Part shown: positions 30,620 to 64,000 of the stretch, piece by piece | How positions within the stretch are numbered: the stretch's first letter is position 1 | Layout of the letters: the number at the start of each line of letters is the position of its first letter | Source of the DNA: Anthoceros angustus | Lineage: Eukaryota; Plantae; Anthocerotophyta | DNA: 64,000 bases | Direction: 5' to 3' | NCBI GenBank assembly: GCA_010909165.1 | Contig: MU008215.1 | Span: 124,001-188,000 of the forward strand | Made by a program: the position numbers and the translations under genes | Notes under the pieces: generated by a model | Seen by the model: the letters and a program-made list of their open reading frames with translations, nothing else | What the model was told of the DNA's origin: nothing | Database searches by the model: none

Positions 30620-33600
30620 CTACTGGACCGATGAGTGAGCGCAGTGGCGAAGATTATCGTCCACTAGAACATGCTCTCCAAGGTAGACCACCTTGGTGAC
30701 AATCTGCTGGTTTTCCTACACGCCCTTTAGAGAGGCAAGAGGGCGGATTGGGGGCGGATCATCTTCGCCCGTATTGCTCAGGAGTCGAGGAAGTTGAGGA
30801 ACAGAGGCTGGGCGTTGTCTCCGCTCATTGTCCATGTGGGGACATCTCAACGCTAAGGATGGGGAGGAGGCAGCGCTCGGGGTGACGATCTGCCGGGCGG
30901 CGAGGAGAAGCGCAAGGAGCCGAGCCGCCCATGAGGCAAGGCACCAGGACGAGGACGAGGACGGGAGGGAATCCGGACTCCACTACGCCTGAGCGGACCC
31001 CTCTCTCCAAGGAAGTGCGGAGGATATTCCGCTTCCCTCCTCTTGGTCCCTCGCATGAATAGCCATCCCAAGGGATACTCACAGCGGGGGATGGAGATGG
31101 TGCTTGATCACTTCGCTGCCCCCCGCGGCTGCCGGACCAAGCCGTTGAGCCGGACGGGAGGAAGCAAAGAAAGAGCGAGCTTCCACTTCCGCCATCGGTC
31201 CAGGGGCCGACTCGGTGCCCTTATCACTTGCCAGCGAGGTGGCAGGGGCGGAAGAAGGCGTTGAGAAGGGGGGCGGGCAGTCATTGGTAGCCAAGAAGGG
31301 GTCGTAGCGCGGCAACCCCTGCCCAGAGCGAGACTTATCTCACCTACCATTGGAGAGCGGTGACTCCCGGACCCCTTCACACCTCCGGGACCACCAGCCC
31401 GGGCGGCCGAGAGAAGGAATTAGCCCAAGAGCCAAGGAGGGTGGGCGCGCCCGGCTCGGGGCAGACTGGGACCTAAGGGTCCTAATTGAGATCAAAGTCC
31501 CTAATCCGGACTCACTCCGGTAGGCGGTATGGTGGTCCTTAACGGACCGGGAGATGCCTATGCCCTTGACGGACTTCTTGGGGGTCTCGCCAGCGGCAGT
31601 CGTGGAGGAGACACAGCGAGTTTTGGCAACCTCGTGGACGGCATGCTCTAGGGACTCTGCCGGGACGAAGACCCGAGGAAGTGGAGGCAGAGGCTACCCC
31701 GTCGCGTTGTCTCCGTTCATTGTCCATGTGGGGACATCTCAACGCTAAGGATGGGGAGGAGGCAGCGCCCGGAAGGGTGACGATCACGGGAGGCGGCGGA
31801 GAAGGCGCGGGAACCAAGGAGCCGCCATGAGCAAGCGCACCAGGAGGCAGGCGGGGCGGAGAATTCCGGACCCACTCGCCTGGAGCGGACCCCTCTCCTC
31901 CAAGGAAGTGCGGAGGATATTCCGCTTCCCTCCTCTTGGTCCCTCCTGAATAGCCATCCCCAAGGGATACTCACGAGGATGGAGATGGTGCTTGATCACT
32001 TCGCTGCCCCCCGCGGCTGCCGGACCAAGCCGTTGAGCCGGACGGGAGGAAGCAAAGAAGAGGAAGCACCAATTCCGCTTCCATCGTCCAAGGCGGGCTC
32101 CAGTTGCCCTTATCCTTGCCAACGGAGTGGCAGGAGGCGGAAGAGGCGTTGAGAAGGGCGGGCAACGATGCGACAAGGCCATGGGGTCACGGCAAGAACC
32201 CCACCCCGAGACTTATCTCTCCCACGTGGAGGCGGGCAGCTCCGGACCCCGCCACCTCGGACCATGAGCCGAAGAAGGAATTAGCGGCAAGAGAGCCAAG
32301 GAGGTGGAAGCGCCCGCCTGACTCGGGGTGACGGACCTAAGGGTCCTGGTGGGTCCAGTCCCTAATCAGGACTCACTCAGTGGCGGTATGGTGGTCCTTA
32401 CGGACCTGGGAGATGCCTTGGCGGACTTCTTGGGGGTCTCTGGTGGCAGTCGTGGAGGAGACACGAGTTTAGCAACCTCGTGGGATCGGCATGCTCTAGG
32501 GACTCTGCCAGGGAGAAGACCCGAAGTGGAGGCCACCCAGCAGATGATGGGCTCCAAGGAATTCAGGTGGGAGTGACCGCAGTGCTGCGAGAGGGAAGAG
32601 GCGGGAGTCCCTCGCTAGGGTCGGGAGGCAGGCTAAAGCAGAGGCAAGGTCCATGACGGGGCTAGGCAGTGTTGTTGTGCGGACGACTAAAACGCTCAAG
32701 AAGCGCGGTGGCGGAGGACCTATCTTAGGAGAAGAGTATGGCCGAGGGGAGGAGGCGGAGAAAGCATGTCGGCCGGCGGAAGGGGCCAAAGAGGTGTGAG
32801 AATGCAGCAGGGGAGGCGAGCAGTGAGCTCGGCAGGGCAAGAGGCGAGAGGCCTCTGCCCAAGTGATGGGGACCACTACCATCGGGATGGGGAGTTGGGT
32901 GGAGGAGGCCGGGAAGCTGACCATGGCAAGCTGAAAAGTAGCGGAAGGCGGGCGCGCGAGCAAGCAGCGTGGCAAGGATGAGGAGATGGAAGCACCGTGG
33001 GCTGGGACCTTGGTGAGCTCAGTTGGAAGAAATGCGTCGAGAGTTGGAGGGCGAAGAAGACCACAGGTTGCGACTCGAGGTAGTGAAGATGGACTCCTTG
33101 AGGCGGATAGGAGATCATGAGTGGGAGACAATGTCTCCGGCTACTTGAGGGTGGAGGAGGGCCGCTCCAAGCTGACGAACCACGGCGTGGCCAGAAGCTG
33201 GAAGAGGCAGGCTGGGTGACACTGGGCGTCGAGGCGGGAGTTAAGGCGGGCTGGAGCGAGATGTGACGGCCTGAAGGACAGGGACAAGAGGGCTCGGGAA
33301 GGAGGCGAGGCTGTTGATCTCTGCCCTCCCCGGGGCAGGCGGAGGCTCAGTCGCCATAGCTGGGAGGAAAGTTGGCAGTGCAAGCGGCAAGAGGAGGAGA
33401 ACGCGCGAGGAGGCAACGACTCCGAGGGGAAGTGGTGAAGGCCCGCGCATGGCGGCTTCATGGGAACAGCCAGGGACCCGAGGCTGGGCGACCTGTGATG
33501 GGGCGACACAATAAGCAACAAGGGCATACTAGGCTGCGGAGAATCTGGAGTGGAGTATCCAGTGCTTGCGCCCATGTGGAGGAAGGCCATCCAGCGAGTC

Positions 33601-35120
33601 GACTCGACTTTCGTATTATCATAGAGCTCCTCAGGTGGGCACACCACTTCTGTGAGATTGAGGACCCGCAGGAGGTGGAGGAGCACAGGCCGAGGGGGCT
33701 GAGGCGCCACCACGAGAATCTGGGGGCCCTATTTGGTGATGAGGCGGCCGGTGAGGGAGGGCCTAGAGGAGGAGGGGCAGGAGGAGGAGACCCAGGCGGT
33801 GAGACAACAGACCCAGTGGGTCCGGGGCACTGCGTCGAGAAGGGGAAGAGAGCTGGGAGGAGCAGGAGGAGAAGTTCAGAAGGCGCTAGGGGACCCCGGT
33901 GAGGAGGGATGAGGCAAGGGAGCAGAAGGAAGAGGTCCGGTCGGAAAAGAGCGGACCCTTGGGAAACTCCGACTTGGACGTCAGGAATCGAGAGGACGGA
34001 CCCCGAGGTCCGAACTCAGGAGGAGGGGACGGACCCCGATCCGGACTCAGGAGGAGAGGCGGACCACGAGGTCCGGACTTGGGAGGTGAGGCGAACCGAG
34101 GTCCGGCCTCGGAGAGGAGCAGGTCCAGTGGCTCCTAGGCAGTAAGGTAGGGGTGAAAGTTGGTCGGTCTCAGCCCACCCGGGAAAACAGATGAGCGGAC
34201 CAGCAGGCGAGGGACTCACGATGCATGCCAATGGATGAGTGAGGAGGAAGACTTGGTGGTCACTGCCGGTTGATGATCCACCTCGATGAGTGCGGCTGGC
34301 CAGGTCGGGTAGGGAAGAGCCTCCACGGGACTCCCGGGGGTCGCGGATCATCCGATTGGGTGCTCCATGAGATGCGACTGGAGATTGGGTGCGCCCAGGA
34401 GGAACCATGGTCAACACTTGACCCAGTAGCCATAGACATAGGTAGAGAAAATAGGGGATGCGGAGAGCCACTTGCTGAGGCATAGCTGGACACTAGCTTG
34501 AATTAGGGGTGTAATAAAGGCGCTCCCCGGGAGCGTAGTATAAGAGCGGTGCACGCTCATGTAAAAGGATCTTTCTTTTGAGGGTTGATCCGCGTTGTTA
34601 TCTTCGCGAGGCCCTTGTGCTTGTCTCTTGCTAACGCGAGTCCCAAGTCGTGAGTGGGCAATACTACTTTGGAAGGCCCGATCGAGTTCGCGATGTGAGA
34701 CCCTAACGCGTGGTGGTGTGTATACGGGGAAGGCGGAGGACCCCGGACCGGACACTGGTTGCTCATATCGTCGAACCTCTGTCCTCCGAGACGGAGGTTC
34801 GACGACCAACAGGCCAGCAGTGCGAGAACTCCGAGCACGCGCGAGCTTGAGCGGAGAGACTGGTGGACGCCAGCGTGGAGTGCAACCTACACATGTTGAC
34901 GTGAACCTCAAGGCGCGGTGGTTGTAGTAAGGCGGCTGCCGCTCTTACAACCCTGCGCCCGATTGAAATGAAATGAGGGGGTAAGTGAAGTAGATTTCGG
35001 ACGCGAACGAGTCCTTAAACGTTTGGTCATCCCGGGCCTGTACGGTGAACGAATAGGACGAAGTAGAGAAGGGTAGAATAACCACAGCTCGGGTAGACGG
35101 GCGCGTTGGGGTGGGTGACC
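30620..35120. mobile_element. Unclassified GC-rich repeat element, copy 2 (inverted relative to copy 1), with ~890-bp internal tandem duplication (~30800-32500)
   Basis: TTGTCCATGTGGGGACATCTCAACGCTAAGGATGGGG at ~30828 and ~31720; reverse-complement homology to 24470-29200. Confidence 0.55.
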
Positions 35121-35635: not shown

Positions 35636-37749
35636 TCAACCAAACCCAGCTTCCTTGTGGAAATTGTGTGTTGACAAACACTTGGTCAACAAGTCGGCAG
35701 TGTTCAGCTCCGTTGGCACATGTTCAATCTGTATCACCTTCCGCTCAACAGAGTGCTGGACGAAGTGGTGCTGAATTTCAATGTGCTTCGTCCGAGCATG
35801 AAAACGAGGGTTCCCAACCAAAGAAATTGTAGACATGTTGTCGCAATATAAAGTTGTAGGAATCTTCTGGTTGAAGTTCAGGCCGGCTAGGAATGATCGT
35901 TCCCACTCTGCTTCTTTGGCTGACTCTGTCAAAGCCTTGTACTCAGCTTCGGTGGATGATAGAGCCACAGAAGCCTGCTTCTTCGAGCTCCAGTTCACGG
36001 CTGCTCCCGATAAGAGAAAGCAATAGGCAGACACACTCCTACGCTCATCTGGATCAGTTCCCCAGTCAGCATCTGCATATCCAACCAAGGTGATATTCTG
36101 ATCCATGCCTTGAAAGCATAGTCCATGTGTTGAAGTGCCCTTCAAGTAGCGGAGGATCCTTTTGACGGCAATCCAATGCTCCTGACCTGGCTTCTCCAAG
36201 GATTGGGAAACTGCACTGACAGCATGCTGGATATCTAGTCTTGTCCAGCAGCTGATATAGTTCAAGCACCCTACGGCATGACGATATGGCACTTGGCTCA
36301 TGAGTTCTTGATCTGTGTCATCCTGTGGAGATTGGAGGGAAGTGAGCTTGACCCCAACACAACCAGGTGTGCTGACGGGCTTTGCATCTTGCAGGTTGAA
36401 GCGGCGAATGGTCTCGTTGATATACTTGGTGCAGTGAAGGACAAGAGTGTGGTTAGCTCTATCCCTAAGGAGTGAACCCCAAGAACAAAGGTGAGTTCTC
36501 CAATGTCCTTCATGTCATATCGCTTGTGCAGCATGGCCTTCACCCAATCCAGCAGATCCCTATTATTTGACGCGAGGATTGCGTCATCAGCATACAAAGC
36601 CAATATCACAAGATATCCTCCTTTGCAATATATGTAGACGTTGGCGTCTGTAGGGTTCTGGATGAAGCCAATGGACTTGAGGTACTTATCGATACACTTG
36701 TACCACTCTCGAGCACTTTGCTTGAGTCCATATAGGGTCTTCTTCAATTTGCACACCCAATCTGGATGTTCCGGATCGACAAAGCCCTCAGGCTGGTCCA
36801 TATAGATATCTTCCTCTAATTCTCCATAGAGGAAGGCTGTTGAGACATCCATTTGCTCCAGATCCCAGTCTCTAGCAGCTGCAAGGGCTAGGATCATCCT
36901 GATGGATTGTGTCTTGACGACATGGCTGAAAGTTTCGTTGAAGTCCACACCTGCTACTTGTGAGAAGCCGCGAGCAACAAGACGTGATTTGTAACGTGCT
37001 ATGTCCCCTTGTGCGTTCAGCTTATGTTTGAACACCCACTTGCAGCTCACCGTTTTCCTTCCAGCAGGTAAGGGGCAAAGTTCCCATGTTCCATTCTTCA
37101 TCAAGGAGTCATACTCGTCTTGAATTGATGGAAGCCAATGGTGTTTGTGTGCACCTTTTATAGCCTCCTTGTAGGTTTGAGGTCCACTGGGTGAGGTGTG
37201 CTAGTGGAGGAGGCTTCACATAGCCTAAAGGCATTGTGGGACCAAGTCCTCGACTCATAGGGTCCGGAGGTCCAGCTATCTCGAGATGGACGACCGCTTG
37301 ATATCTCCTTTCGTCAACAATAGGTTCAACCTGAATGGGAGCACCATCTGGTTCTGCATTGACAACATCATCGGTCAAGTCAAGAACTTGGTCATCCTGA
37401 TCAGCGTCTGCACCTGGTTCAGGGTCCTCATCAGAAAGAGGATCTGCTTCAAGTTGCTCAAGTATGTCTTGCTCAAGTGGCTGTTGCTCAGGAACATGAT
37501 CTGCTTCATGCTCTTCAACATCAGTAGGGTTAGCAGGTGGAACAATAATAGGTTGGGAGGGCTGCAACGTAGGTATCAATGGTACTATAGATGCTGGAAA
37601 TCCACCCCGAATCGCCACCGCCGAGAAGACACGATGATGAAAGATCTTGTGGGTACACGGAGGGGGAGTCATCAAAACCAAGGTCAGCAGTTGCAGGTGA
37701 ATCAGGTGCGGGTGGAGAAGAAGTAACGAACTCAGAATCCAAAGTAGAA
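35636..37749 (-). CDS. pol: Copia E pol: IN-RT linker, RT and RNase H
   Basis: 36298..37104 (KWVFKHK, YKSRLVARGF, LYGLKQS, YADD) and 35636..36301 (GYADADW, VALSSTEAEY, KHIEIQHHF). Confidence 0.93.
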
Positions 37750-38585
37750 AACACCATAATGTTCTTTCTGTCGTAATAAACAGGAAGCGGCGTTTTCCCA
37801 CTTTATACAAATAACCGGCGGCAACATGGGCACTCAAACCCTTCTTGGACTATTTGTTTGAAAGTAAGAGGGAAAAAAAGGGTGGCACATGTACTTGAAC
37901 ATGAGTTCATGACATGGGGTGGCCAAACAAAGGGATTTGTTGGAAGACTGAATGCAATTTTGCCTGCAAAACATGCCCATATTTAAGTCCATGTAGGCCG
38001 GGGGCTGCAGAGGGCCTGCTATGCTTTGTAATATGCAACTTTTACACGCATGGTGAGTGGTTTGGGAAATATATGGATATGCATGAAGTGTTGAGCACAG
38101 ACGGGCTTAAACAGTTTGTAACGTGGATGAGGTGTACGGCCTTGGTTGTATTCTCGCACACGCCAATGCAACATCAAGGCAGCCGGTTGTTTTTCCAATT
38201 TTATTGTGGCTGGTCGATAAGGCACAGTGGGCGCCGGCATGCCGCGCCCACCCCCCCGCACTGTACATAGATGAACTTCTATCCATTCCCATCTCGCGGT
38301 TAGCGATAGCAAGAAGCAACAATCGCATTTTACCGCCGAGTTCATGGGCATATTAATTAACCTCGGGCATTGGGACAAGACGACAAAGAGCATGTGGGTG
38401 ACACTTTCGTTGCGGTCCGTTTGTGCACGGTTTGAATTGATAACATCGTATTAATGAGCGGCAAGAATAAAGTAGGCGCTGCTCCATTAATAGGGTGAGT
38501 CCCATAGAGAACTATATAATTGTGAACATCTACTACTCAACATGCTCGCCTATTTTGCAAGGGCATGTTCTCGACTTTGGCCCTT

Positions 38586-41500
38586 TCAAACATCCGCGAC
38601 AATTTCACTCCTCGCCAGACTCAATTCCTTCATCCAATATAGGACCTCCGTCATCACTCGGTCGCTATCGTCCTCTCGTTGCGAAAAGGCGAGTTTTTCG
38701 CGAATGGCCTTCTTATCCAAGCATACAAGTGTTTCCTTCCATTCAAGTTGAATCCATAATAGAGGATTATAGTCTTGTCAACAAACAACCGTTGGATGTT
38801 CTTTGGTAATCCTCTTTTTCCCACCTGCTTCCCATGTCCCGTTCGTAAATCGTGCCCCCGAACAAAAAATTCTTCAACATATTTCCTTCAAACGCATCAG
38901 TGTGCTCAGTTCTGTACCAGTGGACCATAAGCGAAGGCTTCTCACAATCAAAGTCCACGCTGTCCACCTTCCCAATCCAAAAAACTCTGTTATGTGCGTC
39001 TCCTGCACATGGAGTAGCGATGAACATTCCTTTCCGTATCTCCTTGATATCCCCATTCATTTTTTCAATTTGTTGCTGTTGGCGACCAATATTCTGATAT
39101 GCCCCCAAATACATATCGCGTTGGGGTACCTCTCTGAGTAATGCTTCGTCAAGGACAACCTCTTCAGGGACTTGAAGAGGAGGCAAGTTCGCCCCTGCCT
39201 CCGCTCTATTGTACCATCTCCATGGTTTTTAGCACAAGAGCTATGTTGTTCTCCACAATAAGGGCGATTCCCTCTTGATCAATCCAAAACAACCTCCACC
39301 ACACTCTCTCTGCCGCCGTTATGTATGTGACAGTCCTCAAGTTCAATAACCCATTCTTCAAGTGCTTCACACCTTCTGATGGCGACAGACCACCATCCTG
39401 CCCCTTTTTGTCTTTCGCTTTCAAAGCCATAAGTGGAGCTGGACCAACTACAATGGTGGGAACGAAGTTCAAAAATTCTAAACCATCTTGATTCCCGGTG
39501 AAGTGGAATCGCTGCTGCGAACAGAATGCCAGCCTTGCGGCTCTTCCGTGTGATTTTGAACGATGTTGGAAGGAAAGGTTGTTCTGTTTCACGCCTTGTA
39601 TGCATATCCTCTTGCTCCTTTCTGATCGCATACATATGAACGAAAGTCCGCTACTCGTTATAATCTTCACTTCCGGTTTTGGAGTGAATGTCGCCAATGT
39701 CCTGTATCTGTAAAAGCCTCTTTGTGTCTCAAGCTTGAGAAACAAGAAAACATTTGATCTACGATCATGTGTGTGACCAACGAAGGAAACCAACCTTGAC
39801 TTTCACAAACACTTGAAGGTCAACGAGCATATTTAGGTATGCGAATAACAACTGATTTTTGTTCTCCGGCATGTATTGTCAAGTCGAGATAAAGCACTTT
39901 GGAAGCACCCTTCATATGAAAATATGACATCTTGAATTATGTTGATAGTTAGATTCGCGTCATTCCAAATTGGCATAATGCAAATACGCCTCGCCTTGAA
40001 AGTGTAATTATGCACCATACACACTACATGAACATTAATAAGTGAACTATCCGCTAAATCTTTTGGGTATCGAATAAAATGGGGCAGCTTTCCTTCTTTT
40101 GGTCCATACCGCCGATAGCGAAGCATGTACTTGTGAGGTTGAGCATAACTTTTAGAGCGATGCTTTGCGCTTTGTCCCTCTGCTCAGACGTAGTCGATGA
40201 GACGCCGATGCCCCTTCATATACCTCACCGAAAATATGCACATGTCAAAACAAGGAGTATTGCACAATCTCCACCACATTTGACCACAAAACTCCTACAT
40301 GAGTACGGGCACACCGAGCTACACCGCATGCAAGGACTAAGGCAGGATGGGATGTATGGCGACCATGTATTGCGCATCATGCACTATACCCATGGGGAAC
40401 AATATATGCCCATAGGCGCCGGCATGCGGCGCCGACATATATTGCCGGCATAGGTCGGGTCATGCGGTGCTGCAAACCGATGTATGGCATAGGCGCGGCA
40501 TGCCGGCCCGTGCAACCATTACGGACATAGGTCGGGTCATGATGCCCGCAAAAACCGTGGTATGAACATAGGCGCGTATGCGTCGCGTATGTAATAGGAG
40601 CAAAGACTCATGCCTGCCCCCGCTAGCTAGACATAGGCGCCGCATGCCGCCTCCGCACCGAGCTATGTACATAGGCGCGGCATGCCGCCTCCGCACCGAG
40701 CTATGGGCATAGGCGCCGCATGCCGGCGCCCGCACCGAGCTATGTACATAGGCGCGGCATGCGCGCCTATGTAACCAGAGCTCAGGCCATGCGCCTATGT
40801 AACCATATCTATGGGCATAGGCGCCGCATGCCTTTGTAACCGAGAGCTATGGTTACATAGGCACCGCATGCCGCCTTCCTCCAAACATCATGCACGCATG
40901 CCACCATGACGCCTACCACCGCCATTGTAAGCACGATGGTGCCGGCATGCGCCACATGTTATCAACCGTCTTTGTGGGCATGACGCATAAACCGATTGGA
41001 TAAACGGTCCCTACCATGCGGCAACATGTCAACGAACGATTCAATTTCCCGGCTTGATTCGCCTTGTGATTAAAGGAACAAACCTTGATCCGCCTTGCCG
41101 ATGTGTTGCGAATAGTGCGCTTGAGGCCCTCGCAGAGAACAAGTAGAAAACTTTGATTTTGGTATCCGGACCTTGGAAAGTTGTTTCTCCAGGTTAAGAA
41201 ATACGCATAGGAGACGAACTTCATGGAGGACCGTGCCATATCCCTGATCGGGCCCATATTTCCAACTTGGAAAATGTATCGGGCATGTGAAAACATCGAC
41301 GCTCTTTCGACATGAATTGAAAAGTGGAATCCATCCATGCCAGCTCTCACCATGCGACGAGGGTTGCCGAGGATCTGGCCTCGCTCCCCATGGAGCATTG
41401 CACAATACTCTGGCCTTCAACTCCTCGTACCGCTCGGAGCCTATGCAGTAAACTCTCCGGAATGCTTGCAAACAACACCGAATGCGCCCAGTTCCCATGA

Positions 41501-42400
41501 TATGTGTGATGACCTTCTCCTTAGGTTTCGCCGCGACGTCCACATCCACTAGTGACTGCAAAAACGCTTCTTGCTCCGCCCTCCCCATCCTCAGATAACG
41601 ATAGCGCTGCTCTTGCAAGTTTGCCTTGCACAGAGTTTGCACACGAGCTTGTTGCGATGGTTTCAAAGTCCATCACTACCTCGCTATCGCTTTTGGACAA
41701 TGGAACCCCACATGCCCGCCTTTTGAATCACCGAATCCACACATCGCTCGCTACAAATGTTTCACTCGGTGGCTTGGGGTGGAAAGAGCATCTCTCATTA
41801 CCCATCCCTTCGCCGATCCGGTTCGGCAATCGGTGATTCATCGCGAGGTTGAGCCACCTCGCTTTCATCCGCTGCAAACAAACCGGCGCAATGTCGGCGA
41901 TCGATTTGTCCTCTTCCTCCATGCCTCGAACTTCCGGACTCCGCTCCATAGCCGCAGAGGTTCACGTTTCTTGGAGTGTGGGGAACACACCGAGGAAGTC
42001 TTGGTGATGTTTGCGTCGCCTCCTCCACCTTCCCGTAGAAGTCATCTCAACAGATTCAAGCAAGCATCCACATGGTTTGTCTACAATTCCAGTTCCTATG
42101 AAGTGCGCTTGAGTGTAGACGGAGAGGACAAACACACCATCGATGGTCCACATTGCAGGGGTTTGCGGTGTCGCAGATACAAACTTGACACACCCTCGGC
42201 ACCCGTTCAAGCGGGTATTGCGTTTCCTCTTCCGAGTAGCATCAAAGTCCCTCCGAATTGCGACACGATCGCCTCGCCCCTACAAAATCCGGTGGAAGCC
42301 GATTGTCAGCTCTGGAGGAACATTTGAAAGCCTATACAATTGCAAACCGCTGGAACAGCGATCACCTCAAACGCTTCAGAGCTGTGAGTTAAGTGTAACA
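38586..42400 (-). CDS. DUF7869/Sola1-like DDD transposase of S1 (intron-containing, frameshifted; 5' end approximate)
   Basis: Pieces in order: CLQAFRRVYCIG; VRIPKSKFSTCSLC; GMDQ..KLPHF..PK; WNDANLTINII; LDN; VFAYLNMLV..VF.KVKVGFL.VGHTHD.DQMFS; C-terminal FWIGKV...VHWY; stop at ~38586. Confidence 0.82.
40410..40890. repeat. Array of at least 11 ~38-bp units with core CATAGGCGC(C/G)GCATGC, inside a predicted intron (~40225-41083) of the S1 transposase
   Basis: Units start at about 40411, 40449, 40487, 40526, 40568, 40633, 40670, 40708, 40747, 40816 and 40856; minus-strand donor AAG|GTTTGT at 41083. Confidence 0.85.
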
Positions 42401-42979
42401 TCGTGGTGCACTCAGAACTCAGAGGTCACACTAGTCTCCAACCCGACTACCGTTCACCTTTAGAGTCGGTGTGACATATGTAGAGTCTTAGCTTGAAGAG
42501 CTGGCAGACGAAGGCGGCGGTGACAAATGCGATGCATGCACCACTTAAATGCTCAGCAACGGAAATCTTTGAACTCATTGGAGAGTAACCGCGCCGCCTT
42601 TCCCCAACGACATGCGCCACCGCATGAAACCGGATTTGAAACAAGGAATCGATTTAAATGAAGGTAAATGCATGGATTTTACCAATCCGCCAAACGATTG
42701 AGACCGGGCAACTCATATGGTAATCGCGGCTCAAACAGGGGTTTATGTTCCCAAGTGCTCGACGCCGCTGTGAAACACCTTCAGCGGCCTCGCTTCGCTT
42801 TGAACGTCGCAGCAGCGGCAAAGAGTCGAATTGGGAGCGCCACCGCCAATTCCTTCATCGCTTTTGCGCGCCGGTGTAGTAGGTGCGCACCGCCTTGCCT
42901 ATTCCTTTCCACTACGCCGGTCTACATGCACAATTCCACTTTATCTAACCCGCCCGCTTTCCACCGCCGTATGCTGGTA

Positions 42980-45900
42980 TCATGGCATCGGGAGGAAGTT
43001 GCGAGCAAGAAGGACATGGCGACGACTTGACCGCCAGCGCGGCCCCAAGGCGTAAGAAAGGGAAGAAGAAGTCGACAAGGCGAGGATGCAGCCTGTGGCA
43101 TCGGGTCCGCCGGTGGAGAAACACCATAGGGCATCGAAAACCGCTGCAATTCCACAAAAGCAAGCACGACAAAGTCCGGAGCGGCGGGGCGGTGGCGGTG
43201 GATCAAAAGGCGGAAGAAAGGGCAACCAGAGCATCACGCTTATAACTGGAGGAAACCATGCGTTGAGGAGATGACCAATTCTCATGATGCAATTGTTTGC
43301 CTCGACAAGGAGTGGTTTCTTCAGCAGGAAGCCGAAAATTTGGATGATGCTGAGCGGTGGACACCGCTCTTGAAATTGTGGGTAACAGGATATGGACCAG
43401 CGAAGCCTAATCAGAGAGCAAGAGTCGGATGGGTTGTCTGGGCTACCTTGGACATGTCGAACGGGACCCGGAGTTTGAGATGTTGTTGACAACTAAGCCA
43501 CAGCAATTAGATGAAATACGACCGGTTCCTGATGAGTTCAAGGTTTTCACGGTGGCGCTCGGAATGTTCAAGGTGAATAAGTGCACACCAGAGGTGTTGG
43601 TGACCGCATTTCGCGAGAGTATGAACAACCCACAAGTAAGTATTCGTGATCCGATTTAATTGCTGCACCTCCTCCGGTCCTTTCTCGCTCAAGGTGTGAT
43701 TCCCGAACTTTGGCAATTGTGCAGCCGAGGGCTTTCTACAAGCAATGTGTTGTTTCATCACGCACGCTTATTGACCACGGAGAGAAAAGCATGCGGGCGA
43801 GAGCTACCGAATTATGGGAAACGATGCAGGTAGCTCGGAAGATGAAGAACTAGGACCAAGAAGCATGACAAACCCTGGAAGGGCGGTCGGATGACGAAGA
43901 GGGAAAAATATGGAATCGATGCAGGACAAGACAAGGAAGTCAAGAAAACCAAGAATTTGCTATGCCTGGAGCATATGTGGCCTTGCTCATCTGCATATGA
44001 CCCTCAGCTGGAGGACGCCGCATGCCGTCCTCCCCTCGCCTGAGTGTCCCGCCCCGCCAACCCCACATGCTGGCACGTTTATGTCTGTGGAACGTGGAGG
44101 GGACGAGGCAGGACGCCGGCATGCCGGCGTCCTCCCTTCATCATCCCAGGGCCGGCGGCACCCGTCCACAATGGTTGGAGCTGTCCGCGCCGATGATGTA
44201 GGTGACAGGGCTTTGGGGGGACCAAGCACTGGAAGACCGCCTACAGGGAAAACAAGGGGCAGTGGGCCTGGACAGTCATCGAGAAGGAGATCCCCAAGCC
44301 GAATGGAAGAGGAAGACAGACCTTCCGGGAACGAGCTTATCATCGCGGATGTGAACAGGGCCGGTGGGAAGAGGAAAGGAAACATAGAAGCGGATGGCGG
44401 AAACCGAGTCAATCGCAGGATGATGTAGATGTTTCACGGAAAAGGTGAAAAGGAATTTAGCTCCTCCCAGGAAGATGACATACCCACAGTTCATCTTTCA
44501 ACGGATGAGGAGAGGCGGCATCTTCTTTTCACGATGAGGACTATCTAACCAAAGATTCGGATGCAGCAGATGCAAAGAAGGTTGTGCCCGAAACTGTTAG
44601 TGAAGCTGGAGAATCTCAGCCCGCCTGCACCTCACTCCGGATGCATATAAGGCGGGTGGATGAGGCATGGTCCAATTACTTGGCCCGCGTTATTGGAAAG
44701 GGACGAGTGGAAGAGGGCGACCGCTCGTATATGATTGACCCAAAGGAGTGATGATCCGAAGACTTGGGTGGAAGAAATGTATGTAAGAAGTATGTAATGG
44801 GCGTTTTGGGAGGCAATCACACATTTGTGCTATGCAACATCCGGACATTTCGCTGTCAAAGAGCGATTCAAGTGGATAGAGGCTCATGTATATTGTGGGC
44901 TTACTTTACAAGAGATGAGGGTACTGGCAACATATCACAACACAATGTCGGATAAACGCCGAAGATGTCTTTCATTGAGCAAGTTAGATACCTAAGGGAT
45001 GAACTCATTGCGGCAGATGGCGTGCATACAACAATGACTTGAAGTTCAACTTATACAAGGTTCGGGACCGATCAAGACGATGAGGACGAGAAGATGATGC
45101 ATACAAATGTAAAAAGTCACAATGTAACGCACATCTTGTGCATGCCGGAAGGGAAAGTCCGGACCAATGTTGACAAGATCTTCTCAAGTGGGAGGCTTGT
45201 GAATTGCACGAGCAAAAAAACATGTGGCGGTATGAGCAAGAAAAGCAAAGGGAAGCGCAAAGGCAATCAAGACATGAAGCGAAGAAGGGGTGTTTGTGAA
45301 ACCAAAGGAGATGCAGACGGCCCGGGCGTTGCTTTCAAGGCATTCCAACAGCGAGCGGGCAGCAAATGCTCATCAAATCAAAAGTGGTCACCGGTCTCAT
45401 CGATTTGAAGGAATGTCGGATGAGATTATTTTGCGGAAAAAGTTGCATTGGGACCCGCCTTGGTGGCGGCGGCGCCGGTGATGCGGGGCGCCTGCCTGGA
45501 GGGAGGATGGAGGCGCGCATGCCCATCCCTCCTCTCCCCTCCATAAGGCCGGAAGGCCGGTGGCATCTTCCGGATTCAAGTATGAAGGTCTAATGCTAAT
45601 ATTGGTTTCCTTCATGCCGCAGCAATGTATGATTGACCCAAAGGTGTGATGATCCGAAGACTTGGGTGGAAGAAATTCAGAAGTATGTAATGGGCGTTTT
45701 GGGAGGCAATCACACATTTGCTGCTATGCAACATCGCGGACATTTCGCTGTCAAAGAGCGATTCAAGTGGATAGAGGCTCATGTATATTGTGGGCTTACT
45801 TTACAAGAGATGAGGTCGTACGGATCACAACACAATGTCGGATAAGCGGAAGATGTCTTTCATTGAGCAAGTTAGATACCTAAGGGATGAAGCCTCATTG

Positions 45901-47520
45901 CGGCGAGATGGCGTGCATATGTCAATGACTTGGAAGTTCAACTTATACAAGGTTCGGGACCGATCAAGGCGATGAGGGACGAAGATGATGCATACAAAGC
46001 GAACAAAGTCGACAGCACATCTTGTGCATAGCGAAGCGGAAGGAAAGTCTGGACCAATGTTGACAAGATCTTCTCAAGTGGGAGGCTTGTGAATTGCACG
46101 AGCAAAAAAACATGTGGCGGGTGGTATGAGCAAGAAAAGCAAAGGAAGCGCAAAACAGACATGAAGCGAAGAAGGGGTGTTTGTGAAACCAAAGGAGATG
46201 CGAGGCGACGTTGCTTTCAAGGCATTCCAACAGCGGCGGCAGCAAATGCTCATCGATTGCAAGCGAAAAAGTGGTCACCGGTCTCATCGATTTGAAGGAA
46301 TGTCGGATGAGATTATTTTGCGGAAAAAGTTGCATTGGGACCGCTTCTTGGTGGCGGGCGCGGCATGCAGCTTCGCCTTGGAGGAGAGGATGGAGGCGCG
46401 CATGCGCGCCCCTCCCTCTCCCCTCCATAAGGCCGGAAGGCCGGTGGCATCTTGATTCAAATGAAGGCCGTCTAATGCTAATATTGGTTTCCTTCATGCT
46501 GCGCAAGGATATTGAGGTGTTAACGGCGTGCCCAAAATTTTCAACAATTCATTTATGAGGTGAACACATGGAAGGGCTTAGAGGATGAGCAAAGACAACT
46601 AGCCGACCAAGACATAGAGGATGGACTCCTTCAATTCACCGCTCCACATTCGAGAAAAGGTGCAATATCGTACATGGAGAGATATCCTCGACATGCGAGT
46701 ACGTGAGGAAGAGAAGGTACTCTTTGTTTGTGATGGATGTACCGTGGTTTCGAGAAAAGGCCCAAGGACTGACGCTTTGATATTTGGCAAGTGGGAAATG
46801 TTTTGCACTCCTTCCATGACGAATGAATGTGATCGATCGGATGATAATCATGCATGGTGTTGAAGATGCCCATTTGGTGAGAGAGGCTATGAAGTGGTGC
46901 GGAAGGGGACTCATTTCGCTTGTCCGGGACAAGACAAACGTAAACAATGACAAAGGTGGGTCGACATCTTGAGTATGTGACAAGAGGATGGGGTTTGAGG
47001 AAGACAAGTGACTTGCAACGGGCAGTCATGTTACCGAATGCTTTGCAGGGCACATTTAACAATGGAAGATCGGTGATTGGCCACGATACTGTGGTGAAGA
47101 AATTGTTATATCATTCACTCGACAAACTTGTCGTCTGCCCCTACCAAAGGCCTTTGGGGTTAATGATGAAGCTCATCAAGACATTCTCCAAAGAAGGCGA
47201 CTGGATAGTGGATGCTTGTTCAGGGAGTGGGACATCTTTGATGGCTGCTTTGTTGTCTGGCCGCCATTGTATTTCTATTGAGGCTGACAAGAGGTGTGCA
47301 GAGTTCATTCCGCAGCGAGTGCATGGATATGAAGTATTGCTAGATGCAGAAGAGGAGCTCACCCATGAGCCGCACCGCCGAGGAATATCTCGCCTGGGCC
47401 AAGGAGGTTTATGGAGTGAAAAGAAATTGGAAAGGCTCGACAGCCTCTTGTCGCTGTGAGAATGAAAGAACATCTGGAGACCTTTTGGATGAGGGTCAAC
47501 AAACACTAGACACAAAGATG
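42980..47520 (+). CDS. ParB-like domain + beta-class N6-adenine/N4-cytosine DNA methyltransferase of S1 (frameshifted, probably with introns)
   Basis: Basic NLS-like PRRKKGKKK (~43050); GVLGGNHTF ParB/Srx-like motif (~44800 and ~45690); motif IV-like RRYSLFVMDVPW (DVPW 46736-46747); PYQRPLGLMMKLIKTFSKEGDWIVDACSGSGTSLMAALLSGRHCISIEAD (46947..47459). Order IV-TRD-I indicates beta class. Confidence 0.85.
44730..46502. repeat. Tandem duplication (~0.9 kb x2) covering the ParB-like region
   Basis: TATGATTGACCCAAAGG at 44730 and 45628; both copies end GTCTAATGCTAATATTGGTTTCCTTCATGC. Confidence 0.92.
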
Positions 47521-48039
47521 GCACTGCCGGGTTGATGGGATAGAGGAAGATGATGCAGAGGCAATGAAGGCGATGACACTCAAGACCCGATGATAGTCGC
47601 CTTAGAAACATTACCGTCCCCGATGGTATCCGGCATGTGTGTAGCGTAATCCTGTGTTGATCCCAACCAGACACATGTAATGCCCCGTAAACCTAGCACG
47701 CTATCGGTTTGACCATGAGTTTTATGTGCAAGGCCAGTATGCAAGATCCTACTATGGGTTTAGGGTAATGACTTGAACGGCTTGCTTTTAATAAATGTTT
47801 AGGTTTTCTTACAAATTTACTGATGGTGAAGGCCAAAAACCAAGAAAGTATTTCTATAGGTCCATTAAAAAAACAGATCTTGTAAACTAGGCTTTATTGA
47901 GTCTTGCATGCATAGTGCGGTCCACAAGCTCGCTGGCTTACTTTAGAGCCGAATTAGTAAGGGGACAAGAAAGAGGAACCGGCGGCAATCGTTTTGGAAC
48001 CGGCGTTCATTATTCCGATGGAAAGAACATTATGGTGTT

Positions 48040-48777
48040 AGAAGTGGTAAGCCGAGGCTTGATAAGCTCTTTGAAGGTGACGCTCCGAGCAAAAATCAAC
48101 GATCGAGTAGGAGGGTCATAGAGTTTATATGCCTTGGTTTCTTCTCCATAACCAATGAAAACCAAAGGTCTTGCCCTATCCTCGAGCTTCCTACTGCTAC
48201 GAATGGATATAGGCGTAGTCGGTGAGCCGACACCGAGGTGAAGCACTTGGTTTCCGCCCATATCACTTCAAACGGAGTGCGATGTGCACTGTACAAGCTT
48301 GGAAGTCGATTCAAGATATATGTCGAATAACCGCCTCCTCGGGCTTTTGAGGCTGACCAAGCTAGCATGGCACGTGTCATGTTGGTGGTCCGCTTGCGTT
48401 CGCCTACTCCATTTTGTTGTTGAGTATATGGGATACTTAGCTGACGTGTGATCCCTTGAGCTGCAAGGTAATCATTAAATGGAGAGTTAACAAACTCACT
48501 ACCATTATCTGACCTCAAGCATCGGAGGTAACATTCTGTTTGCCTTTGAACCATGATGATCCACTCTTTGAAGAACTGGAAGATCTATGATTTCCTCTTC
48601 ATTGGGTATGTCCAAGAGTAGCGGCTGAAGTCATCTGTTATTGTTAAATAATAGAGGGAGCCACCAAGAGAGGGAACATGTATCTTGCCAGATATATCAG
48701 CATGGACAAGATCTAGGATGTTAGCTGACCTAAAAGCGACATTGGTAGGAAAGGGTAACTCCTTTTGCTTTGCAATC
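48040..48777 (-). CDS. pol: Copia E integrase core and SH3-like region
   Basis: LVHADISGKIHVPSLGG, LRSDNGSEF, QQNGVGERK, FIGYGEETKAYKLYD. The ORF track labels 48096..48554 as +, but its peptide reads from the minus strand. Confidence 0.92.
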
Positions 48778-57420: not shown

Positions 57421-58199
57421 TGACAAAGATGGGACCGTGCGCGCGTGGATTTTGATCATGCTCATACATGCCAAGCATGTATATGGCTCTCATGGCCACA
57501 AGTCGAAGGAAGAAAACAACTCAATGAGGGAGGACGAGACATATGGAAATATGGGCATGCTATTCACTATTGAAGGAAGGACAAGTAGTTGATTCAGATG
57601 CCGCAACCATTCAAAAGTACCGGAAGGTCATGAGGTATACGGAGGGATGGCAAATTGTTAGTGATGATCGTGGAGTGTGTAAAATGGTCCCTCCCATAGA
57701 GGAACGGGAATAACAGAGAGTAAAGTGCACAAGACACTTTGGAGCAGTCCGCGCAATATCGGCGATTCTTGAAAGCCCTTTGCGCCATGAGGTTGCCACC
57801 CCTTTCTCATATCATGCAAAACACGTTTTTAAAAGAGATGTGCAATGGCAGTTCCACTTAGAACAATGTAAGTAAAATCGAGGTTTTTTCCATGTATGCA
57901 CACTTTTGTTTCAGGCGCCGGCGTCCGCACCCTTCCGAGACTTACTGGGAAAGGGCAGAGTGCCAAGACTATGGGTCCAAAACACGAATATGCATTTTCC
58001 ACTTAAGGGTCAAAACGGAATTATACCGGTCAACCTGGACAGAGCCCCTACCCTTTACAAGTCCTGCTACCCAAAGGGTCATCTACTCAACCAAATTGAG
58101 CTCCGAACTGCACCGCTTTCTACATTTTCCAAATCCGCCTGTCACCAAAGTCACCTTCAACTCAAAAACAGAAAAACGCGGAGCCTCGTTGTCGCGGTG

Positions 58200-61100
58200 G
58201 TAGTGTGCCGCTTTCATCCCATATTGTCAATGCTTGGTCTTCAACCGGCCCGTCCGGGGTCTCGGAGTCCTTCATTCTCGACCTTCTTTCCAAGCAAGCT
58301 ATACACTTGCATTTTCCAATGCCCGCCTCGCATGCATCTCCTTTGCCCAAAACTTGCTGTGGCCCCGCGAAAACTTATTGTTATTTCTTCGAACTCGTCC
58401 AACCCGCTCACTCAGACATATACATTGAGCATCGTATGCGTCTTTGTCAATGGCCACAACGCCTTTTCCGCTGTATCCCGCCACCAAAATGATCCCGATC
58501 CGCAAAAGGCCAACAATCCTCGTTGGAGAACATGTTCACCAACATGCCTAATAAGCCCACGGTTTTCGATATGGCGATACGACCATCTTATCACCAGTGG
58601 TAAATCGCCTTCTTCACCACGGTCCTGGATAACTCTTGGCGCTTGATGTCTTTGCCAAAAAAGAGGAGCTTTTCCGACATTGGACTCTCACCGCGCTTCC
58701 ATCCAAATATTCCACTGCTTCCACAAAGACCACCGTTAGGTGGGATGTTGGTTTTCTCCATACCGGTATGACTCCTTTTCCGCACCAAGACCTCAAAGCC
58801 TCCCCGGCTTGAATCACCCCATCCACCCCATGCATAAGAATTATCCTAACACATCGTCGTGGTCTTCTCGTTGAAAGAGCGATGATCTCTTTCAATTCTT
58901 CTTCAACGAAAGCCTTGTCATTCTCATGTCACTGTAAACCTCGAGGGAGGTCGCAGAAAAGAAGAGTATACCTCCTCGGTGGCAAAAATCCTTTCATATC
59001 CAAAATGTCTCGATGCACCACCGATATGCCACTTTGTCCAAGACCTGTGCACTCAAACGCCACCGCATCCATGTCCTTGTCGGCCATTTGTTTTCGCTCT
59101 TCTTCCATCCGCTTCCCATGCGCTATAAACAAAATCTTGGAAAGGTTTTGGCGTGCTTTCCAAATCCTCAATGTCTCCGGCAAAGCAGAGGTCGAAAAAA
59201 CTCATTGACAGCTGGAGGCGCGTCACCGCGATTGTGTGCGCCGGCCACCGACTCCAGAACCGGCGGCGCGCAGGGAGGCGGCCGCGCCATGAAAGTGCGG
59301 CGCCCGGCCAGTGCCGGCCACCGCATCAGTGCGCTGCCGCGCGCCAGGCGGACCGGGCGCACTTGCGCCTGAAACAACAGAGGCACGGCCACGACGCGGC
59401 GCCACCGACCGCGACTCCCCAACGAATACACTCACTTACCACTTCGCAAAAGTGTTGAAACTTCGCCAATTCCTTGGCCTCGATGTTTGGGAACTTTTTA
59501 CTTAAGGTCGCACTTCATAGCCTTCGAAGGCATGCTCGATAAGGTTAATCTTCTTCCTGCCAACATCGTATCCATATCTTTTAGCTGAGCTTTTCCTTGG
59601 ATGACCTTGGTCACGCTATCAACATCTCTCACCCTTCGCCCTTCGGGACTCCTTGAATGCTCTCCATGCCCTTCCGAGCATTGGAGCCGGACGAGGGGGC
59701 CGATTAGGGGCCGTAGTTGGGTCTTGTGGCTTCCGCTTTGCGCCCGCCGCCGCCCCGACCGCGGCTTCCTCACCGCCTGGGAGTTCGCACTTCTACATCC
59801 GGAAAATGGTGTCCACGTTCTCCCACAATTTACCCGCACTCGCAATCCTCAACGCAGAGTCTTCCATCCACCATCTTCCACATAATCGTGTCCTTGAGTT
59901 TCCAGCCTCCAAAGATCCCCAAAGAACTTGTACACATTGAACTTCCACCGCAGAGGGTTTTCCATCGGGTGTGTCCGGTGCCAAATCTCAAGCTCATCAT
60001 GTATGTAGCGACTTGTTCAATAAAACCAAGCTTCTTCCTCTTGTCGCACACATTGTGATCACCGCCAAGACCATTTCTTCCTCTCAAGCTGCATATACAT
60101 GGCCTCGAGCCATTGAAATTTATCTTCCGGATACATTTCGAGGTCTGCATGGCGATAGTTCCTCCAAGACCCCTAGGGTGTAATCAGCTCGATCTCCTCC
60201 GGTGCATCTTCTTCTTCAAGCAGTCTTGGATCAATCATGCACAAAAGTGGGAGCGCCCCTTCCTTCACGGACTCGCATCATCGAACAAGGCACTTCATCC
60301 ATGCCTCATCCACCTTCCTTATCTCGAGCATCCGCCGTTAGAAATGAAGCGTGAGCAAATGTGAATGTCGAATGTTGTGGTTTGCACCCGCTTCTTGTAG
60401 GCCCGAGTGCGAACCATCTCCGATAGTCATCCTCCTCGCGGAGCTCCGCTGCTCGCATCCGTGGTCGTGTCCGCAACGGCCTCTTCTCGCATGCTTCCTC
60501 GACTTCCTTAATTTTTCCTCCGCCCACCTCTTCTCCATCACCACCGAGATCTTGCCTTCCTCTTCGCTTGATTGTGCTCTCGCATGGAAATCAAAACAAG
60601 ATGCTTCAATTTACATGCTCGAATTATGGAGGGCGAGCCGTTAGGAGCATTCTTACCACCATTCGCCTTCTCATCTTCACCGGAGACTGACAGTTGGATT
60701 CCCTTCTTCTTCTTTCTGCGCCTGCCGCCGGGGTCCTCTTCGGACGAGGAGGGTCACCTCCTCCTCAAAAGCCTCGATTCAAGACCCGAGGCTGGACATG
60801 TTGCGAGCCATGGGCCTCGCCCGTGCTCGCCTCCGCGGACCGAGGCCGAGATCGCTCCTCCTCTTCCGGAGAGCTCGGCTCCACCGGAACCTCGTCCTCC
60901 TCCATCTCCGGTTGCATAATCCGGGCATCGTTTGTGCACACAACCCACCGGCCCGCCTGATAGCGGCGTGCGTCGCACACCGCCTCGCCGATCACCGGTC
61001 GATCACTACACCGTTCTTCAAGACCCTTGGAAGTGAGTAGAACGCGCAAAATTGTTCTCTGCTCATTTTAAAGAGGAAAACAATGAGTATACCAGATGGC

Positions 61101-61830
61101 GAAACCCTAATCGAAAATGGGAAGTGATACATGACGATATACAACCGACTTACATCTTGAACACTTTTGGAATCACGCAAGGCCGATTTCAACTGGCCGG
61201 CTCACAACGAGGCATTATCTTGGCGCATCCATTATCGAGGAGATGTGTGTTGATGTCATCGTTTATGTGCAAATGAGGTTTCTTGGTGACCAAAAGCGTA
61301 TGTGCATATCTTAGCCCATCGCAATATAGAATCCATCCACTCGGAATCCCCTCAATACCATTGTAACCGTTAATCCATAAGGGAGTGGAATCCAAGGCAC
61401 TGGATCTTGGGTTCTTCTTGCAACAACGCTCCACTCTTTATGTGTTGTACCGCGGAAGAGAATCGGAGCTTTTTCACCGAAAGCTGCTCCACAAAGTTAA
61501 AAGCATGAGGAATCGCTGATCGCATTTTCCACCGAGGTTGGTGCTCCCTCGTGGCCATCAATGTCTTCATATCCTCTCGCTTGAGTACCCTTTGAGGTGG
61601 ACGTCCGGACACTACCATGAGAGGATTCTCTCAATTGCATAATAGCGGTGGGGTTCTGTTACCACATTCGGGATCTGCATCCCCTCATCCGGTGCCCGCC
61701 TGGCGATCCTGCTGCTCTTGACCGCCATCGCATTTTTCCGCGCTCGACGTGCGGGCGCCAACGCAGCGGGGGTCGATCTCGCATGCTTATTGCCGTGGCC
61801 CTCGCGATCACCATCCCGCAATCTTCAAAA
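58200..61830 (-). CDS. ParB-like + beta-class amino-DNA-methyltransferase of S2 (frameshifted)
   Basis: EGHGN..APARRARK N-terminus; LWINGY..GWIL..LLVTKKP; GVLGG...FQWLEA..Y...HNV..KRKK.GFIEQV (~60000-60180); EEERKQMADKDMD..HRDILDM..RRYTLLFCDLP (58929..59183); TVVKKAIYH..DKMVVSPY.KP.GLL..LVNMFSNE..FCGSGS...GKGVVAIDKD (58440-58625). Confidence 0.82.
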
Positions 61831-62269
61831 CCTCATGCGGGAAGTTGGGAGGAAGTAAGAGAATTGATCCGGACTCGAACTCTTGATGAAAAAGAGGCTC
61901 GAGCTGTGGAAATGAAATATGGATGTTTGAACCGCATCAACGGATTACGAAAGCCTTAACACCGCTAGTTACGCTAAACGGCTCAAGTAGTAGCAGGTAG
62001 GTCAGAACACGGTCATCATTCATTTAACCTCAAATGCCTAAAATAGGCCCATTACAAATTCGATGCATCCACCTCATCTTATGCCATCATTTTCTAAGGA
62101 TGTGCACTCTCATTCAAGGTCCATCAACAGAACTGCTACGCCATCACCATCACGCAACCGCAATTATAAATCATCCAACACCACACGGTACCACCTTATG
62201 TCACATGTCTATAATTGTGGGTGTGACTTTGATCTTGATTCAAAGTGCGTTCTTCCTCGCATGCAGTAG

Positions 62270-64000
62270 CTCTTGAAAATTTGCCGATGTTGAAGCAAAG
62301 GAGTTCTTGAAGTCAAAGGACTTGGATGCTATCGGAAGGATTCCTGATATGCAACGAAGATGCATGCGTCGGTGGCGAGCCAAAGGCACTATTTGCATAG
62401 ACATTCCATGCGATGTATCATTTGAACTACGGTCGAGGCATCAACGGTTCCTTGAAATGCCTATCGGCTCAAGGTATTCAAGTTGAAGAGGAGAACTAGA
62501 TGAAGGTACGTCGTGCAAACTCGTGAAATCGATTGCATTCAAAGGCTCTTGTGAACATGATTCCGGATGTGTGTTATTCGTCTGCAGTGCACGGCCTCCA
62601 CCACTTCGACGCGATAATCGCATCCATTCCAAAGACACCGCCGTTTCAAGATGTTGGATTCCATTCACGGAAGTCCTTCTCCGCCAGACAGCTCGCCGTA
62701 CATCCCGCCATCCGCAAGACTACTCCTCCGGAAGTGCTCCACGGACGACATGGTCGGATATGGCCGCCTGCTGGGGTGAATGCCAACTCGGTTTTGCACG
62801 GTTGTATCTAGAAGATACTGCTTCCACTGCCCGGGCCCAAAGACGTCGGTGGAACTGTGGAGGAAGAGGACTCGGATGATGTGCATTTGAACATCCACCT
62901 CCAAAGGCGCATATACAATTTGAAGCCCGGTCCGAATCATTTATCGAGCATGGCGGACCACCACGTAGACGCCAAGTAGACGGCAATCTAAAGTGCCCGA
63001 GATGAAATGTGAAGAGGTTCAGATAACCGTGATTTTCGCAAAACTGTGGTAGACAATGCTTGAGGACAATAGGGAAGGCAACCTTCGAGATTTGAGGTAT
63101 CGGTTCCTTAGAATGTGCGGGCAGGAGGAGATGCACCTACAATCCCTTTTGATGTCGATTATGAGGCGATGGAAGGGTTAGGGTAGACTCGTTTCTGGAC
63201 GAGGAAAAGTGTATTGTTGTAGAGGCCTTGACGCGTTTATGTGTCTAGCGGGTACGAAGAAGAAAGCGAGCGATCGGAACATTGCGTGGTCCGCCTTCCG
63301 ACGAAGGCGATGAATCAAGATGTCGCAATGCCCGCGTGGATGAACCAAGCTTATGCTTATTGCCGAGAGAATGCCAAACATTGAAGTGTATCACCCCGAC
63401 TCTTACTCAAAAGGCGAGGTGTTTCAAGAATACAAGCAACATATGCGTGGTCCAAGAAGATCTGTTTCTCATTCCTACTTTTGTCGACTTTGGGCTACGA
63501 CTTTCACAGGTGAAAATTCAAGAGCAATCGGTTTGCCTTGTGCACAACTGCGATTACCTCAAACGAAATATAAAGAGCGAGAAAACAGAGAAAACAAGGT
63601 GAGGCTTGATGTGAAATTGTGTTTTGGCAATGTTGGGGGATGCGCGCCGGCCACCGCGCCAGGTAGGCGCCGGCCACCGCGCCGACGGCCGGCCACGGCG
63701 CACAATATGGCCGGGCCGAGGAGTGTAGTTTGTGACCCACCGGCGACTCAGATGCTATTCCTTCCCGAGCGCGCTTTATTCCTCAACGTTGTTTGGGTGA
63801 TTATTTTGCGAAGCATTTGAACGATCCGAGGCGATGCGCCCATCAAGTCCGAGAGAAAATGCATCAAGCACCGTGAAATGTTATGGAGACCCAAAGTATA
63901 TCGGGATATCCATCGACGGATGGACCAATGAAGACACAGCTTCCACATTTCACGCGTTTACCCAAGGACCCGGATGTAGGTTTGATCGACCATGTTGTGG
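62270..64000 (+). CDS. DUF7869/Sola1-like transposase of S2, N-terminal half (5' end approximate)
   Basis: MPN..VYHP..YSKGEVFQEY..SHSYFCRLW..F; CTTCDYLK; GT-AG intron ~63599-63813; PKYIGISIDGMDQ.KTQLPHFTRLPKD (63890-63968). Confidence 0.82.

Follow-up and report, generated by a model that had tools for sequence, protein, structure and literature searches.

A probable Sola1-superfamily DNA transposon with a methyltransferase-type accessory gene in Anthoceros angustus

A window of 64,000 nucleotides from the Anthoceros angustus assembly GCA_010909165.1 (contig MU008215.1, positions 124,001 to 188,000 of the forward strand; all coordinates below count from the first letter of this window unless a different contig is named) was analysed. 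A 10,290-bp element spans 37750–48039; its ends are inverted repeats, the sequence AGAA is duplicated at its borders and it is inserted in the integrase frame of a Copia element. We identify it with high confidence as a decayed cut-and-paste DNA transposon of the Sola1 superfamily that carries, on the strand opposite to its transposase, a methyltransferase accessory gene. The Sola1 traits found were a DDE transposase, a 4-bp target-site duplication (TSD) and terminal inverted repeats (TIRs).

Boundaries, genes and decay of the element

The two TIRs (37750–37779 on the plus strand, starting with AACACCATAATG, and 48010–48039 on the minus strand) are 30 nt long, 90% complementary and perfect over the first 19 nt, and they form the longest inverted repeat of the region. 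The 19-mer was found at two sites in the window, both of them element ends, against a chance expectation of 0.01. The two copies of the TSD were read directly at 37746–37749 and 48040–48043. Removal of the element and one AGAA in silico yielded a continuous minus-strand frame, in which GYGEETKAYKLYDPPTRSLIFARSVTFKELIKPRLT is followed across the junction by TSTLDSEF; this frame reads as a typical Copia integrase C-terminus and runs on for ∼70 more codons before the Copia sequence breaks. Because the removal joins the Copia frame, we take both the insertion and the duplication of 4 bp to be real. Both the sharp bounds and the restoration of the host frame on excision had been proposed in the first-pass annotation of the window, and both were reproduced here. 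The host Copia element was assigned from open reading frames and the junction frame: its downstream part (linker and reverse transcriptase) lies at 36298–37749 and the part split off by the insertion, with integrase-core-like sequence, at 48044–48554, both on the minus strand, and it is degenerate further downstream of the junction. The alternative that a host gene lies here, flanked by inverted repeats that arose by chance, was considered and rejected.

The transposase is a pseudogene on the minus strand (38794–40174) that covers the DDE core and the C-terminal domain and contains several frameshifts and stops. It was matched in tblastn by two PF25273-annotated proteins (P0178 and P0177; E = 3e-26), in agreement with the DUF7869/Sola1-like transposase that had been suggested from the letters of the sequence; the Pfam DUF7869 profile itself gave one weak piece in the window (E = 0.004). 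The transposase of a related intact element, contig L002 (described below), aligned at 39272–40168 and 38914–39222. The motifs GMDQ (∼40110), LDN (∼39883) and GHTH (∼39778) are present as had been noted, but the motif string quoted with them was pieced together from three reading frames, over which LDNT, ENKN(QLLFAYL...), GHTH and VDQMFSCFS are split within 39670–39900 (∼230 nt). A 200-codon open stretch at 41073–41672 (minus strand) is probably the N-terminal part of the transposase, judged by its position and by a resemblance in pattern to the first part of the L002 transposase, its N-terminal exon; the stretch gave no alignment of significance, and its assignment is tentative.

The name DUF7869 was not found in the literature searched. 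The published transposase of Sola1-1_Ec32 from Ectocarpus reads DGANQ, VDNTVAENKNN and MVGHTHIQIDQIFSCF at its catalytic blocks (PMC12477816, supplement), and the corresponding blocks of L002 are DGMDQ, LDNTTKENKNK and LVGHTHEDIDQMFSCF. At this motif level, the signature DG.(D/N)Q / DNT..ENKN / VGHTH..IDQ.FSCF is common to Sola1-1_Ec32, L002 and the window element, and for this reason the Pfam family DUF7869 was tied to Sola1.

On the plus strand an open stretch of 171 codons (46944–47456) scored 44.8 bits with the Pfam profile N6_N4_Mtase (PF01555; gathering cut-off 26.7, E = 1.9e-11), and relatives (P0001, P0005, P0004 and P0014) extended the alignment upstream over 46667–46942 in tblastn; the domain as a whole was placed at 46667–47456. 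Motif IV (DVPW, 46736–46747) precedes motif I (DACSGSGT at ∼47211–47234, with SGSGT at 47220–47234), which is the order of the beta class. A family profile searched against the PDB matched DpnA, CcrM, M.BceJIV, MboIIA, RsrI, the bdelloid N4CMT and PvuII (E = 1e-8). A Foldseek search with an AF2 model, again at the level of the family, gave E = 6e-10, probability 1.00 and a TM score by target of 0.78 (up to 0.81), and DpnA, CcrM, MboIIA, RsrI and N4CMT are among the combined Foldseek and PDB profile matches. Pfam, PDB profile and Foldseek agree that the accessory protein ends in a DNA amino-methyltransferase domain of the beta class. The corresponding proposal of the first-pass annotation is upheld, as is its description of two divergent genes, which are arranged head to head with the transposase on the minus strand and the methyltransferase gene on the plus strand. 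The motifs GGNH and SGSGT that it had listed are likewise present in the element.

The copy in the window is dead as assembled, with both genes broken. The methylase domain contains in-frame TGA codons at 46778–46780 and 46817–46819 and a frameshift near 46955, and a tandem duplication of ∼885 bp (B-A-B-A; 44730–46502, plus strand) lies within the methyltransferase gene and covers its GGNH domain. Since both genes are broken, this copy is unable to deposit methyl marks, and a proposed deposition of N6-methyladenine (6mA) or N4-methylcytosine (4mC) does not hold for it; at most it could be moved in trans by another copy. The copies of the duplication share long identical blocks and differ in short indel patches, a pattern that could stem from genuine decay or from gene conversion, or could be an artefact of the assembly. 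Another possibility is that the organism has an intact copy and that the assembly introduced the breaks. The odd indel patches by which the duplicated units differ speak for this, but both TGA codons are substitutions, a type of stop that disfavours a pure assembly error, at least three frame changes fall within 230 nt of the transposase core and the TIRs themselves have diverged to 90%; we regard an intact copy as very unlikely.

Recurrence of the gene pair

When the methyltransferase piece was used as the query of an exhaustive HMMER search, 28 proteins were returned at E = 1e-10 or better. The best named relatives were from Chara braunii and Ginkgo biloba, and a further one is from Riccia sorocarpa, a liverwort; another protein search, based on an alignment, gave no further family members. 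Two land-plant gene models of the family are P0022 of R. sorocarpa (KAL3699649.1), which is without the motif IV region, and P0004 of Ginkgo (Gb_37443), in which motif IV reads DIPH.

Contig L002, from JGI metagenome 3300064063, contains a complete element of 8.85 kb with TIRs of 28 nt that are 96% complementary and begin with AACACC, as in the window element. Its transposase is encoded on the minus strand in two exons, the second of which scores DUF7869 with E = 3e-50. Its accessory gene (protein P0014), on the plus strand, is open over 789 codons and encodes a basic N-terminus, YTVWIVGGGHSREARERL, motif IV as DFPYG and motif I as GCSGSGT. L002 has the same head-to-head design as the window element and is intact. 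Both of its genes are closest to proteins of C. braunii (methyltransferase, 45% identity over 742 residues; transposase, 49–50% over ∼530 residues), and to judge by these identities the two have diverged to a similar degree.

A second element of the same design, diverged and mirrored with respect to the first, was located at 57820–64000, with an end AACACG at ∼57821, and is cut by the end of the window. Its methyltransferase, with the motif DLPRGL, lies on the minus strand at 58415–59036, with the tail of the GGNH domain at ∼59927–60060; its transposase, on the plus strand at 63344–63999, comprises the N-terminal region and the first catalytic block (DG.M.TQLPHFTRLPKD) up to the window end. 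Thus, the first element, the second element and L002 each carry the accessory gene inside the TIRs and on the strand opposite to the transposase. Their methyltransferase domains are only ∼30–37% identical in pairwise comparison, so that the linkage of both genes is taken to be old and not the result of a single capture. Full members of the family have TIRs starting with AACAC, a two-exon DDE transposase of ∼900 residues and, head to head with it, an accessory gene of ∼700–800 residues. The accessory protein starts with a basic N-terminus and ends in the N6_N4 domain, with the conserved GGGH(S)RE domain and then a helical part in between.

Several observations weigh against the reading of the family as Sola1-type elements with paired genes. 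In the C. braunii assembly GCA_003427395.1, no partner gene was found within 10 kb at two methyltransferase and three transposase loci, and a Logan contig (L015) contains the methyltransferase and no transposase. At the borders of L002 a TSD is not evident, the flanks being ATGG (16–19 of that contig) and GATA (8872–8875); GATAT occurs 2 nt off on the left side. No TIR pair of the AACAC type was found at the five Chara loci (L001 and L004–L007). Because of the Chara loci and the Logan contig, the cargo is considered not to be always linked, and an unlinked cargo gene is either a remnant, a non-autonomous derivative or a gene retained by the host. In C. braunii the methyltransferase family numbers at least 12 gene models, and close DUF7869 genes number at least ten; one locus of this species (L004) contains two full methyltransferase copies and fragments within 36 kb.

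The unpartnered methyltransferases in Chara and on the Logan contig are also what a one-off capture of a host or bacterial methyltransferase gene by the window element, in the manner of Pack-type elements, would lead one to expect. We give such a capture almost no credence: the head-to-head layout is found in three independent and strongly diverged elements, the pairing has also been published for a brown alga (Ectocarpus), and the second element and L002 already contradict a single event. The first-pass annotation had treated the layout as the trait of a family, and the second element in the window together with the intact L002 with its AACACC ends bears this out.

Accessory protein and private repeats

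The canonical motif IV, (D/N/S)PP(Y/F/W), is absent from every family member seen. Across the family the motif reads D[FILV]P[YWCHR], with DVPW in the first element, DLPR in the second, and DFPY, DIPY, DFPC and DIPH in relatives; the SPPY motif that is typical of N4C enzymes is absent. This departure from (D/S)PP(Y/F/W) in the two window elements is a point against a working modification enzyme, and methylating activity is uncertain on the evidence of the motifs. In the Erm/KsgA adenine-N6 RNA methyltransferases N-[IL]-P-Y is functional; by this analogy the variants with Y or W may be active, and those with C, H or R are probably inactive. The base specificity (6mA or 4mC) is not readable from the sequence. 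The family may deposit one of these two modifications.

The same motif raises the question of whether the accessory protein is a pseudo-enzyme whose fold has been kept for binding of S-adenosylmethionine or DNA, and which acts, without methylating, as a DNA-binding regulator or a partitioning-like factor. None of the motif IV variants of the family (DFPY, DFPC, DIPH, DVPW, DLPR) is canonical, and from what is known of amino-methyltransferases a flipped base is not expected to be stacked upon by R, H or C in the place of the aromatic residue. On the other hand, motif I (SGSGT) and a PYQKP motif are well kept over a wide divergence, the reading frames of L002 have been kept open, and D/N-[ILV]-P-[YF] occurs in active Erm/KsgA-type enzymes, so that DFPY, DIPY and DVPW are perhaps competent. 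We consider a pseudo-enzyme possible and a good deal less likely than not to be the correct description.

A basic stretch resembling a nuclear localization signal (RRKKGKKKSTRR; 42949–43242, plus strand) lies where the methyltransferase gene is presumed to have its 5' end. The basic run RRKKGKKK noted in the first-pass annotation is present in one frame at ∼43030–43070, and a basic N-terminus is also found in L002 and in the Chara relatives; its place in the reading frame of the gene, in one frame piece, is putative.

The domain that follows is kept across the family with the consensus GGGHSREAR. In the window it occurs twice on the plus strand: copy 1, which contains a frameshift (44630–45000; tblastn to Chara P0029 and P0034 and to L002), and copy 2 (YVMGVLGGNHTFAAMQH...VYCGLTLQEM, 45628–45900; tblastn to Chara P0029, E = 5e-5). 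Both read GGNHTFAA and have lost the arginine of the consensus, which belongs to the G..R motif that follows the central strand of the ParB/sulfiredoxin fold. The first-pass annotation had called this domain ParB- or sulfiredoxin-like. In a protein-language-model comparison the neighbours of the GGGH domain were mostly ParB_N, DUF6551 and DUF3723 clusters, the Ginkgo member matches DUF6551 with E = 0.0013, and the family pattern GGHSRE...C.VY.GLT..EA...HN can be aligned by eye with GGHQRL...CV...L...E.KA...NK of phage ParB_N domains. The statistical tests count on the other side. Pfam gave no ParB_N match in the window pieces or in 14 domain members; PDB profile, PHROGs and tblastn searches of the GGGH domain against phages gave no ParB match; hhalign gave a probability of <1% against phage ParB_N domains, both singly and as an alignment; and a fold search of the PDB, VIA wide and Atlas reached Z ≤ 3.7 and Foldseek E > 0.5, the best sulfiredoxin row having E = 2.0 and probability 0.16. 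This fold search was made with a domain-only model of pLDDT 69, the domain having a pLDDT of ∼40 in the full-length AF2 model. Confirmation of the earlier assignment was therefore not obtained from Pfam, PDB profile, hhalign or fold search, and a ParB-like fold is plausible and not demonstrated; from the language-model neighbours and the motif resemblance, with the statistical tests having failed, we still regard the domain as probably ParB-like.

Two sets of short repeats are private to their elements. A 12-mer, GGCGCSGCATGC, has nine exact copies in the window, all inside the first element (0.01 expected). Seven of the nine form an array at 40422–40831 with a period of 38 nt, and the other two lie at 38237–38248 and 46357–46368; the array of 38–40-nt repeats as a whole (40400–40900) lies between the N-terminal and DDE pieces of the transposase. 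L002 contains eight copies of a partly palindromic 15-mer, GACCGATAGCRATAT, which is unlike GGCGCSGCATGC in sequence. These copies (2265–2359, 3614–3633 and 5692–5916 of that contig) are situated within the intron of the transposase and immediately upstream of two starts, that of the transposase and the ATG of the methyltransferase. The arrays of the two elements match in position and differ in sequence, which fits candidate binding sites in co-evolution with a DNA-binding protein that the element itself encodes, the position being kept and the sequence not. Inverted-repeat arrays near a gene have been proposed as self-binding sites in the red-algal Plavaka PAG3 (10.1101/2025.02.11.637652).

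In the working model for a Sola1-type element with its methyltransferase gene, the transposase would bind the TIRs, excise the element and reinsert it, duplicating 4 bp of the target. The accessory protein would enter the nucleus, bind the element-private short palindromic repeats through its ParB-like or helix-turn-helix part and methylate adenine (at N6) or cytosine (at N4) within the element or close to it, which would mark or shield the element. A role of the family as a vehicle that spreads amino-methyltransferases in streptophytes, as suggested in the first-pass annotation, would fit the relatives in Chara, Ginkgo and Riccia. A wider proposal is that a Sola1 lineage kept the ParB-like/amino-methyltransferase gene from charophytes to seed plants, writes 6mA or 4mC on its own repeats, thereby marking itself with an effect on silencing or transposition, and repeatedly seeded the stand-alone genes of Chara, Riccia and Ginkgo; taken as a whole, this is speculative and we think it improbable.

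Comparison with known systems

The pairing of transposase and methyltransferase has been described before. Sola1-1_Ec32 of Ectocarpus (21.5 kb) carries on the opposite strand a gene with a DNA-binding domain of ParB-like type together with an N4C/N6A DNA methyltransferase (PMC12477816, Genome Biol 2025), and the layout is therefore already described, contrary to what had been supposed in the first-pass annotation; a general literature search on transposons and ParB gave nothing relevant. The termini of Sola1-1_Ec32 are AACCG-CGGTT; its TSD is 4 bp long with a bias towards a final A, and its best match by blastp is a Physcomitrella Sola1 (PMC12477816, supplement). The window element shares with it the Sola1-type transposase signature, a 4-bp TSD ending in A, termini that start with AAC and the opposite-strand accessory gene. 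It differs in size (10.3 kb, or 8.85 kb in L002, against 21.5 kb), in TIR length (28–30 nt against 282 bp) and in the length of the accessory protein (∼700–800 against 1104 residues), and its host is a streptophyte, whereas that of Sola1-1_Ec32 is a stramenopile; the accessory genes were likened by the published description. The Anthoceros element thus belongs to a kind already described, for which the streptophytes are a new host lineage.

The nearest phage matches of the methyltransferase domain are 24–28% identical (494 records). Phage proteins of ∼415 residues encoded beside terminase genes score both ParB_N (PF02195) and PF01555 (Streptococcus phage Javan69, Gardnerella phage AB1) and have the same domain order as the accessory protein. 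They are prokaryotic and shorter and have canonical motifs, whereas the N-terminal domain of the eukaryotic proteins scores no ParB_N. Fusion of ParB and a methyltransferase is a prokaryotic architecture thought to be ancestral to such eukaryotic proteins (Iyer et al., 2016; ParB-Tls loci). The red-algal Plavaka elements (EnSpm/CMC), with the accessory genes PAG2 and PAG3, are giant DNA transposons that likewise carry DNA-modifying cargo, part of which has a ParB-like domain (Petroll et al., 2025; 10.1101/2025.02.11.637652), but they belong to another transposase superfamily, with ParB fused to a 2-oxoglutarate oxygenase and an adenine methylase fused to SET. The bdelloid N4CMT, whose structure is among the fold matches, and Marchantia DN4MT1 are also eukaryotic beta-class amino-methyltransferases of bacterial origin; unlike the family described here, with D[FILV]P[YWCHR], they belong to the host, have no transposase partner and carry a motif of the SPPY type (TSPPY in Marchantia).

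Transposons with their own DNA-modifying enzyme bear on the relation of mobile DNA to host silencing and on the origin of eukaryotic 6mA and 4mC enzymes. The Ectocarpus paper devotes only a few sentences to the pairing (PMC12477816). The additions made here are the occurrence of the design in streptophytes, the non-canonical motif IV throughout the family and the palindromic private repeats at a kept position, which give a concrete hypothesis for the binding sites. The intact reading frames of L002 provide a natural test protein, the window copy being a fossil only.

Elsewhere in the window, a 25-nt inverted pair (CACCACCACACGTTAGGGTCTG..., 22 of 25 positions matching) at 24720 and 34718, ∼10 kb apart, flanks a GC-rich block at 31000–34000 and may mark another bounded element.

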